From contig RBZT01000383.1 in assembly GCA_003693705.1 (NCBI GenBank), positions 1-39,434 on the forward strand: 39,434 nt of DNA, in the 5' to 3' direction. The position numbers and the translations under genes were made by a program. This document shows, one piece after another, positions 27,285-39,287 of this stretch; position 1 is the stretch's first letter, and every line of letters begins with the position of its first letter. The notes under the pieces are model-generated. The model ran no database searches and was not told the origin of the DNA. It saw only the letters and a list, made by a program, of their open reading frames with translations. This DNA is from Polymyxa betae A26-41. Taxonomy: Eukaryota > Protista > Endomyxa: Phytomyxea.

Positions 27285-28596
27285 TTACAAACTGCTGTTG
27301 CGATAGTCCTTGGACAGAATCAAACGGGTCTTGAACTTCGCGCCTGGCTGCAGAACGACAGGGGTTTCAACGGCTGCTGGCTCGATACAGACCATACGCT
27401 GGTACTCAGACGTCTCGAAATCTTTCAAAGCAGATGCTTTGGCCTCAGCTGGGTTCCAGACAACAGCATCGGGAAACGCGTCGTCCTTCACGATTCGAAT
27501 TTCTCCATCTAGGGTAACCATTCATTTAAAACGTATTCCTGATATTATGAACGATTCTACCTTTGTCACCGATTTGGAGCTTGTTTGAAGCCTTGCAGTA
27601 AACGCGATCGATCTCTCCCTCTATCTTCAGGTCGCTGCCCTGGCAGAGACGGATTTTTCCATCATGAGCAGTATCAATATATTTGAGATTGCTGAAGTCA
27701 CGCAAGACCACATTGTTAATATCCTGTGGTGCAATTATAAGCAGGGCTCAAAGCGTTTGGCATTACATTGGCATTACGCTGATCTGGAAGTAAGAATGGA
27801 GAGCGGCTGTGAAAGTGAACGGTGATTTAGAGGTGTTTTCTATCTCCCAATCGCACTGCAAATGGTTCGGTTTCAAACGAACAGTGTATAAGCTGGAGAA
27901 TGAATGAGGCCATACCTACGCTCTGGTATAAGCCTACCGTGAATGGCAAACAGACATCTCTCACTTTCATCGTATCTTCATTTGACGTCAGTTTGTAGAC
28001 AACTTCGACATAGTCTTGTTTTGCATCTTCCTTAATGATCGACCATTGACTTGTGCGAGCAAATCCCTACAAAAGTTTGTTTTTCGTAGGGAATGCATCA
28101 GCCAGAAACCGACATGAGAAACCAGCGGGCCTTTCGGGCCGAATTGGGGAAAAATCAAAGGGATCCCGCCACGAATTGCCTTGGATCCGTCTAGAACGGC
28201 TTTGGAACTCAGAAACAGAATCGGTTTGTCGGCTGATTTAGTATAAAATTGAGTGACGTGCGCACCTAAATAACCATTCAGAATAGGATAGGACACAAAA
28301 GATTCCCAGCTCGTTATTTGAGAAAGAAGTGAGGTTGAATTAAGGCAGATTCTAATTTAGTTTTCAAAGGCAATAATAACCAAACGAATAAATGGCAAGT
28401 CGAAGCAAAACTTACCATAATTATAGACTTCGGCAAAAGCAGAACCGACTCTGAGATGCGTCACTCCAGGCTTCGGATGGGTAATGGTCGGCTGCGATTG
28501 CATCGCCTGAGCATAAGCCCGAGAATGGTTGAAAACCAGGCCAAGCGAGACGAACCCAAGACCGCCGGCTACTAAAGCCGCCTTTCTCGTAAACAT
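27285..28596 (-). CDS. Glucose-6-phosphate 1-epimerase (aldose 1-epimerase family), multi-exon
   Basis: GAHVT, LFLSSKA..KAIRGGIPLIFPQFG, SHGFAR (spliced), FTAALHSYF, EIDRVY, DAVVWNP, MVCIEP. The N-terminal extension resembles a targeting peptide. Confidence 0.92.
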
Positions 28597-29407: not shown

Positions 29408-29816
29408 ATGTCTTTCCAGTCGATGCCCCATTTGGTTGTGCTATTCGCTGTCGCGTCGTTGCTACCGATTGCATGGCCTCAACTCATCGATGGGCATCTT
29501 GGCGACCTGGTGGAAGGCATCAGCGACTTCGATCATGGCCATCATCACCACGGTTACCACGACGGAGGGCATTTCGGCGATCATGCAAATTCGCATGGAC
29601 ATCACGATACGCAACACCACAACGATCACGATGATCATGGCACCGAAAACTTTCAAGGGACAGTTACTGGAACCGTGACATGTAAGTGTTATTTTATAGT
29701 ATCTATCAACTGCCTTGTTGATGATCTTTTTGATAGCGACGGGAACTCACAAAGAATCGAACAGCGAAAAGGAAGATGAAAATCACGACCATCGACATCT
29801 TCTTCATCATCACTAA
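29408..29816 (+). CDS. Small secreted His/Asp/Gly-rich protein (~117 aa)
   Basis: Leader HLVVLFAVASLLPIAWP. Intron 29682-29736 (GTAAGT..TAG) gives a second exon ending ENHDHRHLLHHH*, which continues the His-rich character. Confidence 0.8.
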
Positions 29817-30450
29817 TTAACATACCAAATACATACGAATCGTAATGTTCTCACAAATAATTGTTGAATAGAACTCGGTATGATATTCCTACCTGAGTGT
29901 TTTATTCGTCTTTCTAGAATCGTTCCTGCATTGGTTTCGCGTCCCGGCATTGGTCAGTGTGAGGGCTGAACCTAAGATAAGTTTTCCGCCGCTTGGCGCT
30001 GGATCGTTCCAGAGCCAGATTCTAGAGCATTGCCAGCGACGTTAATCTCTGGATACAGATGGAATGCGAGTACATAAGGCCCACGATAAATATAAAGCGA
30101 CATGAACCATCTGTGCTAACTGCTGTTGTTACATTGCTTCGTGACGCGGCCTCCTCTGCACAACCATCAAGCACTGCTCTCACCTTGATTCATTTTCGCT
30201 GGCAGATAGATCTACGAAATATCCCTTGAGGTGGTTGGAGTGAAGACCCACTAAGATACTGACGATACGGGATTGGCATCCCATCGTGTAGGATCGTGCC
30301 GCAAGGTTGAAAGAGTTTTGAATCCCGCGATCTTGTCTCATTTTGAATTCGGCGCTCTGTTTAAAACTAACATACTGGCGAAATCGGAAAAACAACCCAG
30401 AACTCGGTTGTAGCCAACCAATATTTTATTACCTAAATTAACATAGCACT

Positions 30451-32815: not shown

Positions 32816-35526
32816 ATGGAGTCGTCACCATACGCCGCCGAGCTCGAGCGCGTATCTCGATATGCCCATACCAAGCTGGACATCATTCTTAAGGACATGC
32901 TTGAGCAGTTGTTCTTGCATACGCCTGACGACCCGATTGATGTGAGTTGGGCTCGGTTAGCAGGCGCCGCCAATTCAATCGCTGTAGTTTATGATTGGGT
33001 TCTTAACCGATTATAAAGAACGTGGATCTAGTATGGAAGAAGGCAGTGGATATCACTCCCACCGCAGCAGCCGTCCTCAAATCTTTGTTGATCCAATGGA
33101 TATGACAGAGGAAGCCCCATTTGCTGATTGTCAGTTGTCCAAAGCTCGACGCAGAACAGCCGTTTCTGCAGAGCCAGTATAAATTTTTTTTCGTGCATTG
33201 AGACTATTTTAAGCACAAATTAGGTGGATTTTATGGCAGCTGCCGATGCTCCAGGTCAAGTCATCGCAAAAACCACAGAACAGGTTCAACGAATTCAGCA
33301 ATCTGTTCGAAGCAATATTTTATTTGCTTCTTTGAGCGCCCAGCAGATGCAGCAAGTTGTGGATTCCATGCAAGAAATGCGTTTCCCAGTAACCTCTCCG
33401 TCGGGTTCAGATCAATGTCTTACATTATTTTGTAGGCTGGGGAATCAATTATAAAGCAAGGCGAAGAAGGTGATTACTTTTACGTCCTCAATAGCGGGAT
33501 TGCGAACTGCTACGTTTCGGAAGGCGATGAATCACCTAAATTGGTATTTACGACGTCAAGCAATGTGCCCTCTTCCCTTATATTCTCAGGTGAAAACATA
33601 CAATCAGGAAGGATCTTTCGGGGAACTGGCACTTATGTACAATAGCCCTCGTGCCGCTACTATTACCTCACAAACCGAGTGTGTTTGCTGGGCAGTCGAT
33701 AGGGTGACGTTCCGAAAGGCAAGGACCGAGAAGCCAAATATTTTTGTTTCCAACATCATTTGTCAGGTCCTAATGGAAACAACTTCGTCCTCCAGAAGAA
33801 AATACGAACAATTTTTAGGCGATGTGAAAATTTTAGCATCACTCGATCAAACGGAACGAGCGCGGATCGCTGATGCTCTCGTAGAGCAAACCTTTACCGA
33901 TGGGGAATATGTTATTCGTCAGGGTGAGGTCGGAGACGTATTCCACATAATCGTTCAAGGGCATGCCAAGGTTCTGATGGGTTTTCTAATTTCGCTTCAT
34001 GGCTCATCATTCTTAGGTCACAAAATCAGTTGATTTTCAAGACGATGATGTTACTGTGCTTGAGCTAAACCCTGGAGATTATTTTGGAGAGCTTGCGCTG
34101 ATCAATGACGATGCACGAGCTGCCAATGTTATTGCTGTTGACGATCTCACAACAGTGACATTGGATCGAGGCGCATTTAACAGGCTGCTGGGTCCAATTG
34201 ATCACATTCTGAAGCGCAACCAAGATAACTACAACTTAACTGAGCAAAGAATTTACAACCAGAAGCTACAAGTGGATTGGTTACAATATTTCCTCAACGC
34301 TCGCTAATCCTGGCTTAGGCTGTCAGTGGGGTTCACATTGACCACGATAATGAACCTCGGCCAGAGGTTTCGATGAGGCGACGTCGTACTGCAGTATCTT
34401 CGGAACCAGTCGCCGGTTAGTGATCTGATCTGCCAAAACTTCTGCACTCCTAACTTTCTTCTAGCAATGGTGTCATTGGATTCTATTGCAATTTCTGACG
34501 CTGTCGTTCCAAAAACACAAACGCAACGTGCGTCAATTCTTAAATCGATTCAAGGAAATTTCCTATTTGCCGGTTTGGATGCCTCTCAGCAAGAAATTAT
34601 CATCAATGCCATGTTTGAGAAGCAGTTCAGCGATGGAGAGTATGTCATCCGGCAAGGGCAGCCTGGGAACCATTTCTACATCCTTTCTCATGTGGGTGAT
34701 CTACTGTTTCGGATCTGCAAGTAACATCAATTAGGGAGAAGCTGAATGTTTTGTACAAAGGAAAGACAGTGAATCTCCAGTTTTGGTTAAAACATATAAA
34801 GTAAGAATTAGCAGAATCGGATGGATCACTTTATAACCCTATCGATAAATAGGCTGGGGAGGGCTTTGGAGAACTTGCTCTTATGTATAACAGCCCAAGA
34901 GCCGCCTCAATCCGTGCCAAAGGGGATATCAGTGTCTGGGTTGTGGATCGTCCAACATTCCGAAGGGTGCTTATGGATACAACCAGTCAGAAAAGGACGC
35001 TGTATGAAGGTATGGAGCTGAGTTCAGAACTACGTTCCCTCTGTAAGCCCAATTTTACAGGATTTCTTGGCAGTGTTCAGATTCTTAAATCTCTCGATCG
35101 AAACGAGATTGCCAAGGTTGCAGATTGCCTTTTAGAAAAAACTTATCAAGCAGAAGAATACGTCATTCGACTTGACGAACCCGGAGACAACTTCTACATT
35201 GTCGTGGATGGTGAAGCAGTGGCTACGAAACGCCTGCAAAACAGTACTGAAGCTCAAGAAGTTATGCGGTATAAGCGTGGTGATTACTTTGGAGAGCTAG
35301 CGCTTCTTAATGATCAGGTTGGTTGTTACTTGAAAACGTAGCCTATATTACTTAAACCTTGCAATAGCCGCGCGCGGCTAATGTCATTGCTGTTGGCGGC
35401 CCGCTCAAAGTCGTAACATTGGACAGAGCCAGTTTCGTCAGGCTATTAGGTCCATGCGACGAAATCCTGAAGCGCAACTCCTCAGCATATGTTGCTGTCG
35501 ATGCAACTCTTTATCATGATTCGTGA
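32816..35526 (+). CDS. PKAR: PKA regulatory-subunit-like protein with two tandem modules (D/D, two inhibitor sites, four CNB domains)
   Basis: D/D-like [25 protein letters not shown]; sites [10 protein letters not shown] (33147) and [11 protein letters not shown] (34376); four phosphate-binding cassettes [60 protein letters not shown]. The modules are joined in frame through intron 34272-34318. Confidence 0.88.
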
Positions 35527-35864: not shown

Positions 35865-36775
35865 ATGACATCTATACGATCAAAAACACTTGCCATTTTT
35901 AATGTCGTCATCGCCCTATCATGGTTCCAGACAGCAGCGGTATGTGGTCAATGATGAGATTGGAATCTCTGTAATATTCTGCTTAGGTTAGTCATGAGGA
36001 CCACGACCGTCCTTTTTTTCCAACGGGACGTCGTAATGCAATCTGTGCAGAACCTACGTCTGGTTAGTTTCTTGTTCAAAATATTGGTATATTTGATTCT
36101 AAAGGCCAATTTAGTCCTGATGGCGATGCGAGTTAATCCATCACCGCCATCTCCAAACATTGTCGTACCTGAATCAGAAAACCAGCTCGACTTTATACTA
36201 GAAGCATTTGAGAATCATTTCCTTCTCCGCTGTCTAGACCAGGCTGAGAAAAAGCAGGTTGCGAAGGCTATGAATGAAGAAAAATTCAACGACGGGGACT
36301 ATGTTTACCGAAAAGGAGACGATGGTCGACTTTTCTATGTTCTCTCTCAAGCAGAGGCTGATGGAGGAGCTGAAAACCTCGATCAGGAAGCGAATGTTAC
36401 GAAGACCTACAAAGTAAGAAGCCCAAAATGCCATGCTGCTATCGCGTAATAGCTTGCCTATAGGTTGGGAACGTTTTCGGTGACAATGCTCTTGTTAACG
36501 ACTGCAAAAGAGCGGAATCGATTCGTGCCAAAGGCGCTATAAGCGTTTGGGCTCGGAACCGTTCCACGTATCGAAGCATTATCGCAGCCTACAATCAACA
36601 CAAACAGGAATTAGAGGAAGGTACGTTATCCTACTCGATGGTTGCTTGTGATTTCAAAGTGATATCATCTCAATCAGAAGATAATGCTAACGACTATAGC
36701 AGTTTCAACAGTTTCTCTCTCCCTGACAATGAGCTCGACGATATGAGTGACAGTGAGGAAAACATGGAATCATAA
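35865..36775 (+). CDS. Signal-peptide protein with a PKA pseudosubstrate (TGRRNAI), a single CNB domain and an acidic tail (234 aa)
   Basis: Five exons, 35865-35939, 35987-36062, 36115-36413, 36464-36620 and 36678-36775, all GT..AG and phase-compatible (705 nt, no internal stop). Similar to the second module of the upstream PKA-R gene. Confidence 0.82.
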
Positions 36776-37104: not shown

Positions 37105-38150
37105 TCAGCGCTGTTTTTGAATCGAATCTTGCGCCTTGTTTGTCGCTGCTAGCCTTCTTGTTTCTTGCACTATTCCCGGTTCCCATTTCTGAGAATATCC
37201 TTTATTTATTCTCCGGTTCATGACTGACAAGTTATGTGGACAATGCCGACGGGCGAAAAGCGTGCTGGCCTCTTCGCACTGGTGGACATTGCTGCTGGTG
37301 AAGAAATCCTTTTGACTAAGGGCGAGAGTACCTGGACAAAAGCAATTTGACTTGCCTCTGCGGAACCGCCCGCTGCTATTCTCGTCAATAAACAATTTTT
37401 TAATGATTAGTTGTATTGTTCGGCAATAAGTCGATTTGTCCGATGTGCGAATGCACATGCTGTGCATACAAGCTCACGACGTTCGCGGCTTTCTGTGGGG
37501 TTGAACAATAATAACCGCAACCTTTTCGGTGTGCCCTGCGGCCTCAAACATTAATTTGCGTTGACGCTTATCGGTAACATTTTGATGGATAAACGTGTTG
37601 TGCAACGCACGTAACGTTTTCGGAACGATACGATATTCTGGCGCCCATCTGGTTATCAACATTGATGAATATACCCAGCAACCAAGTAGATGACATACTC
37701 ACTCCAAAGGAAGAAAGTACTCTAGTTCTGGGGATTTATGGAATCCCACGTACAGTTGGGTTCGCAACAGTGATTGGCGAAGCGAGCAACGCTGTCGTAC
37801 TGCTGGGCATCAATATACATGCCGGCGTTCGTGGAATAGTAGTTGACAACATAAGCCGATCTCTGGGAGATCTCGGACAGGTTGTCGTTATCGTAAACGA
37901 TTCCGACATACTCCTGTACGAAATCATTCGTCGCAATACTTTCGGCCGCAAACAGTCCAAAACCGCGGTCTCCCGTGTCCTGAACTGCCACAGTCTTGAC
38001 CAGGCGCTTCTGCATGCGTTGGTTGCAGCACCGAACGCCTGCCTGGCAGTATCTCGGATCACATTCCTTTAAGTGATAAACACCTGCACAGCTGTCTCGA
38101 TCATCGCAAATTTGTGTTTGTCCATCGCAACACAGCAGCAGTTCTTAACC
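37105..38150 (-). CDS. AWS/SET-domain (SET2/NSD-like) methyltransferase, partial or pseudogenised; ends uncertain
   Basis: ECDPRYCQAGVRCCNQRMQK (AWS-like), GDRGFGLFA, FVQEYVG and YIDA....VARFANHCCEPNC. The 5' part contains an in-frame stop and the 3' exons are unclear. Confidence 0.7.
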
Positions 38151-38335
38151 GGCTGGAAGCGTTAACAGCTGCGAGATAAATGTATTGCAGACCCATTTTG
38201 ATTTAGTCTACTGGAGTTTCATCTTGGTAGGGTAGTTTAGGCGAAGTGTAGTTACAGCCTATCAATATCAATCATTGGGAATAAACTGATGTAACTCATG
38301 ACAATAGCGGAAAAGCGGACTGGCGCCGAAATGTC

Positions 38336-38820
38336 TAGGGCTCCGACCGGGTACTAACGGGTCGAACCCGACCCGGTTTTCCGAGTCGGATAACGGGTAG
38401 TACCTGGTACCCGTCCATACCAAATCCAAAAAAAGTTGCAAACAGACAAAAAGATGATGGGACTTTATTTTTTCAGACAGTACTTACCAAACATCAAAGA
38501 AGAGAAGGTTTCTGGTTTCAAAGAATGTCGCCGAAGCCCAATCACGTCACGGCCGCAATTGAATATTCGCTCGACAGCGACTGAAGAGCCCGGAGTCGAC
38601 AAAATGTCTGTTGCCACAGCGCTGAGATTAGGAAACTGTTGGGCGTGCGCTTTCCAGTAATCTAAAGGATCAACTGCAGGATCCTCACATCGTAAATCGT
38701 AGAAACAAAGTCCGTGCCTATCAAACTACCCGACGGGTAGTCGAGTCGGGTACCACCCCCTATCCGTACCCGACCCGGTTTTTCCCGGTACTACTGTACC
38801 CGTACCCGGTCGGAGCCCTA
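38336..38820. mobile_element. 485-bp hAT-type MITE
   Basis: 19-bp perfect TIR TAGGGCTCCGACCGGGTAC; perfect 8-bp TSD GAAATGTC at 38328-38335 and 38821-38828; CCCGA/CGGGTA subterminal repeats. Confidence 0.95.
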
Positions 38821-39287
38821 GAAATGTCCTAGGCGATGCAACGCGCAGGCCAACTGGAACCAGACTTCACGTTGCGGATTTAAAGAATTATTTTTATGAA
38901 ATACACATTGACTTAGATAGAAGGTATTTCAGATCATACCATTCACATAAATTGTTGCCAGCCCTACTCTGTATCTTTTTTAAAATAAACAAAATGTTTC
39001 TATTCTCAGTTCCTGCTTGAACTCATCAACTTCCAACAGTCGAAGTATTTGTAAAGCTAGCTAGCGCTCATCTTCTTCGTTACAACCCGACGTTGACACA
39101 TCGGTGCTCAAGCAAAAAGAATCTTGAGTACAATCAGGTCGCAATTGATTTCCCGATCCTTGCTGCCCTCGACAGTTATTGAATCGGCAATCAAATTGCT
39201 GAATGGCCAGAAGGCGGATCACGCGGTCGAAATCTCTCAAAACAAGAACGTTCGCAATACCCGCATCATTTCAACTTTGATACCGGT

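Follow-up and report, generated by a model that had tools for sequence, protein, structure and literature searches.

The obligate intracellular parasite Polymyxa betae lives in sugar-beet roots and transmits rhizomania viruses, and its infections are described as symptomless. In its draft genome (45.1% GC; PMC6328671), contig RBZT01000383.1 carries a gene for a PKA regulatory subunit (PKA-R), and a shorter gene with the marks of a secreted protein lies immediately downstream on the same strand. The locus raises the question of whether this shorter gene is real, whether it descends from its neighbor, and what an exported piece of a cAMP-responsive subunit could be doing. We analyzed the whole of a 39,434-nt stretch of the contig, here called the window. 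An earlier note on this DNA had read the shorter gene as a secreted, PKI-like inhibitor of host kinases, or else as a cyclic-nucleotide sponge, born by local partial duplication of its neighbor and capture of a signal exon.

The feature at positions 35,865–36,775 of the forward strand is confirmed as a predicted five-exon gene, whose 705 nt encode 234 aa and a stop, with introns of 47, 52, 50 and 57 nt that all have GT-AG borders. Its exons were translated, aligned, placed in trees and folded singly and were never joined, and all full-length numbering is arithmetic. Translated separately, the exons contribute 25, 25, 99, 52 and 31 residues, plus two split codons, and this reproduces the exon 2 frame with its inhibitor site, the single CNB-A domain and the acidic tail described previously. 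Exon 1 (35,865–35,939; 25 codons, phase 0) encodes the putative signal peptide, with a basic n-region and a 13-residue h-region. After intron 1 (35,940–35,986; phase 0), exon 2 (35,987–36,062; phase 1) contains RPFFPTGRRNAICAEP and encodes a linker that carries the R-type pseudosubstrate TGRRNAICAEP (36,023–36,055). Intron 2 (36,063–36,114; phase 1) is followed by exon 3 (36,115–36,413; phase 0), which holds the N3A helices and the first CNB-A strands, and intron 3 (36,414–36,463; phase 0) by exon 4 (36,464–36,620; phase 1), which holds an altered phosphate-binding cassette with the letters FGDNALVNDCKRAES, the hinge and the B/C helix. Intron 4 (36,621–36,677; phase 1) leads to exon 5 (36,678–36,775), an acidic tail with ten Asp or Glu and not one Lys or Arg in 31 residues, ending in TAA. 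Two alternative acceptors, at AG 35,991 for intron 1 and AG 36,104 for intron 2, were discarded, as hand translation runs into stops within a few codons of each.

A published annotation contains the same gene. The P. betae secretome (supplementary file 1 of PMC12503489) lists poly_jg1317.t1, positive by SignalP 6 and negative by DeepTMHMM, with a mature length of 207 aa after removal of the signal, a PF00027 domain at 79–165, and a non-disordered AlphaFold model with a pLDDT of 76.9. The corresponding arithmetic for our model gives 234 − 27 = 207 for the length, 106 − 27 = 79 for the start of the Pfam domain and 192 − 27 = 165 for its end. Gene order fits the numbering as well: jg1313 is galactose-mutarotase-like and corresponds to the epimerase of the window, jg1314 is disordered and secreted and corresponds to a His-rich ORF, and jg1315 and jg1316 are missing from the secretome, in keeping with the RhoGEF and the parent gene that the window has there. 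By length, Pfam coordinates and gene order, the candidate is poly_jg1317.t1, and an independent annotation therefore shares both our gene model and the signal-peptide call. The main text of PMC12503489 contains no mention of cAMP or cyclic nucleotides, and poly_jg1317.t1, a single-copy protein, does not appear in the text of its cluster tables; it is catalogued there and not described. To speak of an undescribed system nevertheless goes too far, since the protein already stands in that table and the double architecture of the parent is old and widespread.

Several neighbors deserve a remark of their own. The epimerase (aldose/hexose-6-phosphate type, poly_jg1313; 27,285–28,596, reverse strand) is also in the published SignalP6 secretome, which is a reminder that the secretion calls of that list are predictions. 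Its N-terminal leader exon has a homologue with 57% identity in a Polymyxa-like relative (L040, below), and the protein may be secreted, organellar or a false call. The His/Asp-rich ORF at 29,408–29,850 has a hydrophobic leader and is probably poly_jg1314, listed as secreted and disordered. SET-domain-like pieces occupy 37,722–38,830 on the reverse strand, and an inverted-repeat element lies just past the candidate.

The parent gene (32,816–35,526, forward strand) has 13 exons and encodes a single-chain double PKA regulatory subunit of 712 aa, laid out as a D/D-like N-terminus, site 1, CNB-A, CNB-B, site 2, CNB-A' and CNB-B'. The source of the candidate is module 2, that is, parent exons 8 to 11, extending to 12 (34,319–35,317, forward strand). 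Exon 2 aligns with parent exon 8 (shuffle p = 0.0015), exon 3 with parent exons 9 and 10, and exon 4 with parent exon 11 (p = 0.0005 each), the last two exons having the same length of 157 nt. The three intron matches claimed previously are real by exon alignment with the parent, and the match of intron 1 is additional, so that all four introns of the candidate have a counterpart. Intron 1 agrees in position, phase and length with parent intron 7 (34,272–34,318), which precedes the inhibitor-site exon in phase 0 and is likewise 47 nt long. Intron 2 corresponds to parent intron 8, also present in Plasmodiophora brassicae, intron 3 to parent intron 10, absent in P. brassicae and represented by an acceptor at that place in L040, and intron 4 to parent intron 11. 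The parent intron between exons 9 and 10, common to P. brassicae, has been lost precisely in the candidate, where the segment at that place has 21 residues, as in P. brassicae and S. subterranea. As a separate matter, module 1 of the parent contains a 48-nt, stop-free, in-frame GC-AG intron (33,719–33,766) that is absent from the P. brassicae orthologue and whose retention would add 16 residues in the hinge.

Toward the 3' end the likeness fades. If exon 5 preserves anything of the beginning of CNB-B', it is very little (p = 0.13), and neither exon 5 nor the DNA 3' of the stop, read with X at stop codons, significantly matched parent exon 12 (p = 0.09–0.7). One frame of that DNA matched parent exon 13 with p = 0.005 among six tests, out of register, and a full remnant of CNB-B' beyond the stop was rejected, as the matches are not significant.

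Phylogeny bears out the local origin for one exon and leaves another undecided. A tree of exon 3 places the candidate within the plasmodiophorid module-2 CNB-A' clade (97/96), as the earlier note had anticipated, and next to the P. betae parent with weak support (87/66), whereas exon 4 has no resolved position, its grouping with module 2 not being rejected by the AU test (p = 0.098). Among columns that are diagnostic for module 2 of plasmodiophorids, the candidate agrees with that module at 12 and with the outgroup at three. Taken with the exon alignments and the introns, the exon 3 tree and the diagnostic columns uphold the proposed local partial duplication of upstream module 2.

The duplication is not recent, and the copy has been kept open. 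Over 156 aligned codons the candidate is 43% identical to the parent, with identities of 0.57, 0.71 and 0.40 at the three codon positions, and dS is approximately 2.0, which is near saturation, with dN of 0.50; the introns of the two genes align no better than unrelated introns. When neutral decay of the parent exons was simulated, fewer than 0.2% of runs remained without a stop at 0.5 changes per site, and a stop-free frame together with four intact GT-AG pairs never occurred. Parent residues are kept at 28 of 51 conserved columns compared with 29 of 94 variable ones (p = 0.007). With synonymous sites near saturation and the frame and all four splice-site pairs intact, the candidate is therefore a real coding gene under selection. 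Nearly all amino-acid change falls on its own branch: dN between parent exon 11 and its orthologues is 0.01–0.06 compared with 0.47 to the candidate, and the exon 3 branch is 2.6 changes per column for the candidate and about zero for the parent. The dN/dS of the candidate's own branch is approximately 0.5 if dS is split evenly, a value compatible with new function and with relaxed constraint alike. We consider it very probable that module 2 was copied in an old tandem duplication, reaching from the intron ahead of the inhibitor-site exon to about the start of CNB-B', and that the copy, with a signal-peptide first exon, one intron lost and an early acidic end, has since evolved as an intact coding gene at about 50 times the rate of its parent.

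The parent itself belongs to a long-lived family. Orthologues with the double module are present in P. brassicae (SPQ96369.1) and S. subterranea (CRZ09813.1), and four CNB domains with, in most cases, two inhibitor sites are found in proteins of Leptophrys, Lapot, Nonionella, Ploeotia and Fabomonas. Because the double PKA-R recurs across these lineages, the architecture is old and spans supergroups. In P. betae, the parent is apparently the sole gene with its N-terminus. Multiplication of R modules can exceed two, as two environmental proteins (P0001 and P0005) have up to six repeats of an inhibitor site plus two CNBs (3779 aa). A contig of 60% GC (JGI Ga0182022_1217549; L041, positions 660–3450) carries a double PKA-R near the plasmodiophorid type in two copies that face opposite ways and both contain frameshifts, which may be sequencing or assembly errors.

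The candidate, in contrast to this widespread architecture, appears to be lineage-restricted and fast-evolving, within searches that could have missed distant orthologues. The parent orthologue of P. brassicae is followed by a VPS9 gene, and a copy could not be detected within 10 kb. A closer comparison comes from L040 (Logan DRR591303, positions 1–4304), a Polymyxa-like relative of 41% GC that is closer than P. brassicae, in which parent exon 11 is identical at 51 of 52 residues and the C-terminus is the same. There the epimerase and a chitin synthase come directly after the parent stop, and that place holds no copy of the candidate. In the window these two genes lie upstream of the parent on the opposite strand, whereas in L040 they lie downstream on the same strand as the parent, and one rearrangement breakpoint falls immediately after the parent, where the candidate is located. 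As the locus has been rearranged between the two, a copy could lie elsewhere in the L040 genome. Within P. betae (1001 contigs, 27,085,814 bases), a search for a second copy brought up, apart from the candidate itself and its parent, only a distant CNB gene on another contig (C505). Exon 3 found no homologue in a word-based search of a 90% protein set restricted to proteins of 83–264 aa, no match in metagenomes, and generic CNB clusters in an Atlas search. When a profile built from exon 3 and parent exon 9 was run with HMMER against 1.84 billion representatives, the best 150 matches were multi-domain R- or PKG-type proteins throughout, with no evident orthologue among them; a distant single-domain orthologue could rank lower.

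The predicted secretion depends on exon 1, in which two basic residues are combined with an uncharged core of 13 residues, and small residues precede the cleavage region; the hydropathy over 11 residues is 2.47. By implication of the published call, the signal ends with residue 27 and takes in the first two residues of exon 2. An upstream in-frame start is excluded by an intervening stop. By a crude rule applied across the window, 8 of 565 ATG-led open stretches of 25 codons (about 1%) are as signal-like as exon 1. The published SignalP6 call, with our hydropathy check, thus predicts a cleavable signal peptide, and with no predicted transmembrane helix (DeepTMHMM) and a small size the protein has the usual profile of a candidate effector. 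The proposed capture of a foreign signal exon is a different matter and stands unproven: intron 1 was inherited, and neither a paralogue nor a donor of exon 1 was found in the P. betae genome. With intron 1 inherited through the duplication, the leader may have evolved where it now stands, out of neighboring DNA or the end of exon 7 that was copied along. Exon 1 has no detectable likeness to the tail of parent exon 7 (p = 0.45–0.5).

The inhibitor site is inherited as well. A shared phase-1 intron fixes the register between the 11-residue site of the parent and TGRRNAICAEP, and the candidate's site is therefore an inherited R-type pseudosubstrate. It has Ala at P0, as does the pseudosubstrate of RI-alpha (PMC6143667), and its ICAE ending is R-like and unlike PKI. 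Five residues of this site never vary in the alignment of the family (R, R, A, E, P), and the candidate keeps them all; the chance of keeping all five is about 0.01 against a simulated background and about 0.05 at the rate of conserved columns. Exon 2 has no Pfam or PDB match, and the pseudosubstrate core of the PKI family, G-R-R-N-A, is present in it. The changes from the parent at P-5, P-4, P-1 and P+1 all yield the residues of PKI-alpha, taken from PKI(6–22) (PMC7878667), and three of them are single-base steps. In a codon simulation, the nominal probability that all four flanking changes are PKI-like is about 2 × 10−5, which becomes about 0.4–1% by our own post hoc look-elsewhere estimate, which allows for four matches among some 11 positions around the core and for several isoforms of PKI. 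These four changes are suggestive in favor of the earlier reading, as descent alone does not predict them, and would hint at convergence of the site on PKI. Kinship with PKI, by contrast, is rejected: exon 2 has its homologue in parent exon 8, and the candidate has Pro at P-6 and Asp at P-11 where PKI has Arg and Phe. In PKI, P-6 Arg and P-11 Phe confer sub-nanomolar affinity. The P-4 and P-5 arginines of the parent have also been lost.

In the CNB domain, numbered after RI-alpha through alignments to 4mx3_A, structural positions and functional surfaces have fared differently. L135, E143, G169, F198, G199, A202, L203, R209, A210, W222, R226, Y229 and R230 are kept, while the candidate shows K118E, N133H, D170R, G178A, V182G, E200D, L201N, Y205N, P208K, A211E, D225N, M234A, R241Q and Y244E. 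Among strongly conserved CNB positions, 9 of 16 and 9 of 21 are retained in the two sets compared, so that approximately half are changed. The cassette departs from the consensus G-E-L-A-L-x3-P-R-A-A in four places (E200D, L201N, P208K and, at the last Ala, A211E), bearing out the altered cassette reported previously, and D170R, G178A, V182G, D225N and R241Q add to the cassette and relay changes. Of the cAMP pocket, R209, G199 and A202 remain, E200, L201, A211 and V182 are changed, and the capping element is missing. In RI-alpha, D170 acts in the relay, R241 contacts E200, and W260 forms the cap (PMC5359514); W260 sits in CNB-B, which the candidate lacks. Exon 4 has its best RI-alpha match in PDB chain 7lz4, which has Asp at 211 and is presumably a Carney-complex mutant with impaired cAMP binding. 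In one natural double R subunit (P0013, residues 550–601) the cassette Glu of CNB-A' is likewise replaced by Asp, and this change alone is therefore tolerated in a full-length subunit. Exon 3 folded alone, being half a barrel, formed only the N3A helices. From these residues we infer that the CNB fold is probably kept, that cAMP binding is weak or lost, that allosteric release is lost, and that the PKA-C docking surface is remodeled.

In terms of PKA-R membership, the candidate has a homologous CNB-A and an R-R-x-[S/A/G]-hydrophobic site in the linker before it; it lacks two tandem CNBs, and a signal peptide stands in place of the N-terminal D/D domain and cytosolic location. With a single CNB, an altered cassette and no D/D domain, it is not a complete PKA-R subunit. 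The description of site plus CNB-A as a minimal C-binding unit holds for the span but not for the docking surface, where the equivalents of RI-alpha Y205, M234, R241 and Y244, which we take to be PKA-C docking positions, are all changed. Given the lost P-4/P-5 arginines, the absence of P-6 Arg and P-11 Phe and the changed docking residues, high affinity for PKA is not expected.

These results lead us to speculate, with a probability of roughly one in three, that the candidate is a secreted decoy for a host basophilic kinase that is not regulated by cAMP. The 207-aa mature protein would be exported from the intracellular plasmodium, and its flexible N-terminal arm would offer the non-phosphorylatable RRNAI to the active cleft of an Arg-directed Ser/Thr kinase of the host root, with the CNB fold as a scaffold carrying a re-shaped docking surface. 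cAMP would no longer release the kinase, because the cassette, the base-binding strand and the relay residues are altered. The action would be like that of the site-plus-CNB-A fragment of RI-alpha or of PKI, on a target other than PKA. The secretome match, the intact frame, the conserved columns, the five site residues, Ala at P0, the PKI-like changes and the changes in cassette and relay all speak for this proposal. Against it stand the lost arginines, the docking and CNB changes, an own-branch dN/dS of about 0.5 that would fit relaxed constraint as well, the absence from our searches of any orthologue by which conservation of the site across species could be seen, and, above all, the problem of the target: angiosperms offer no biochemical or bioinformatic evidence for PKA (PMC11032487), and PKI-type peptides are highly specific for PKA, barely inhibiting others among 55 mammalian kinases tested (PMC7878667). 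As angiosperms have no known PKA, the AGC-type or basophilic kinase named as target in the earlier note must be regarded as hypothetical. The complete scenario, in which half of a P. betae PKA-R was turned into an exported, cAMP-blind inhibitor that converged on PKI and silences an Arg-directed kinase in the sugar-beet root, is doubtful.

The same observations allow other interpretations. It is possible, if tentative, that the protein is a secreted CNB scaffold put to a new use, as an effector or as a wall or zoospore protein, whose partner is not a kinase active site, with RRNAI a leftover and the PKI match due to chance. Retention of fold-forming residues beside changed functional surfaces, the published non-disordered model (pLDDT 76.9), a host without PKA and the post hoc nature of the PKI match are all in its favor, but it does not readily account for five invariant site residues all surviving at only 43% identity to the parent. 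A duplicate with little or no current function, once or weakly constrained and now drifting behind an incidental leader, would fit the very long branch (2.6 changes per column in exon 3 against about zero in the parent), the own-branch dN/dS of about 0.5, the truncated CNB-B', the absence of a counterpart at the corresponding position in P. brassicae and in L040 and the empty database searches. We regard it as unlikely, in view of an open frame and splice sites that all survive near-saturated synonymous divergence, a clean intron loss, a first exon whose signal-like character is expected by chance in only about 1% of stretches, and a published annotation with the same model.

Still less likely is a sponge, in which CNB-A would bind cAMP, a 2',3'-cNMP or a nucleoside and buffer a host immune signal. 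The equivalents of G199, A202, L203, R209, A210 and G169 are kept and E200 has changed only to Asp; an engineered PKA-RI-beta CNB sponge lowers the resistance of Arabidopsis to avirulent Pseudomonas (PMC7402341), and altered CNB ligand specificity is known from trypanosome PKA-R (PMC10959531). The pocket, however, carries E200D, L201N, P208K and A211E and has lost hydrophobic residues on the base-binding strand, there is no CNB-B to supply a capping aromatic (W260 in RI-alpha), and the trypanosome signature (A202E with R209 replaced) is absent. An uncleaved leader could instead anchor an inhibitor that stays in the cytosol, ignores cAMP and acts on the PKA-C of the parasite itself, replacing the lost D/D anchoring, and would thereby explain retention of a PKA-type, PKI-like site in an organism whose conserved parent gene implies a PKA pathway of its own. 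This is very unlikely, as the hydrophobic stretch has only about 13 residues, basic residues before it and acidic ones after it favor translocation of the C-terminus, the published filter is SignalP6 positive and DeepTMHMM negative, the docking residues are changed, and downstream methionines come only after the inhibitor site. Finally, that exons 1 and 2 are not spliced to exons 3–5 at all is scarcely credible, given canonical junctions, typical lengths, inherited positions, and an independent annotation that agrees on three numbers and on gene order.

Compared with known systems, the candidate is closest to the type I-like PKA-R of plasmodiophorid module 2, with which it shares by homology the RR-x-A-hydrophobic site, the N3A motif, the CNB-A barrel and the B/C helix, and it spans the same region as the RI-alpha site-plus-CNB-A fragments in PDB 3fhi and 3pvb. 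It differs from PKA-R in having a signal peptide and not D/D, one CNB and not two, an acidic tail, and changes in cassette, base-binding strand, relay and docking residues. With PKI-alpha it shares a seven-residue identity around the pseudosubstrate, TGRRNAI (PMC7878667), but PKI-alpha is a small intracellular protein without homology to it, whereas the candidate has a folded CNB and a signal peptide. The engineered plant cAMP sponge (PMC7402341) is a precedent for dampened immunity through PKA-R-derived CNBs in plant tissue, but both of its CNBs are intact and it carries no inhibitor site, while the candidate has one altered CNB and keeps the site. Kinetoplastid PKA-R, nucleoside-binding and cAMP-independent, is likewise a protist R subunit with a rewired cassette; its members are full intracellular subunits, and their diagnostic change of A202 to Glu and replacement of R209 (PMC10959531) are not seen here. 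Other candidate effectors of plasmodiophorids (secreted kinases, ankyrins and G-domain proteins; PMC12503489) also combine a signal peptide with a eukaryotic signaling domain. A keyword search of an open-access library turned up no pathogen for which a secreted PKA-R derivative has been reported, and the candidate is a predicted secreted derivative of a signaling gene that has been catalogued in a secretome table and apparently not described.

One contig thus displays the birth of a secreted-protein gene beside its housekeeping parent, with the source exons, the inherited introns, the lost intron, the new leader and a fifty-fold jump in rate all in view. If the protein inhibits no host kinase, it is one fast-evolving entry in a secretome list. 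If it does, it would help to account for the quiet state of host cells that a symptomless virus vector occupies, and a partner recovered by pull-down would make the long-disputed question of angiosperm PKA-like kinases and cAMP targets directly testable. A converged inhibitor would represent a new route to a kinase-inhibitor effector and could serve as a naturally occurring tool for studying the PKA-like activity that is disputed in angiosperms.
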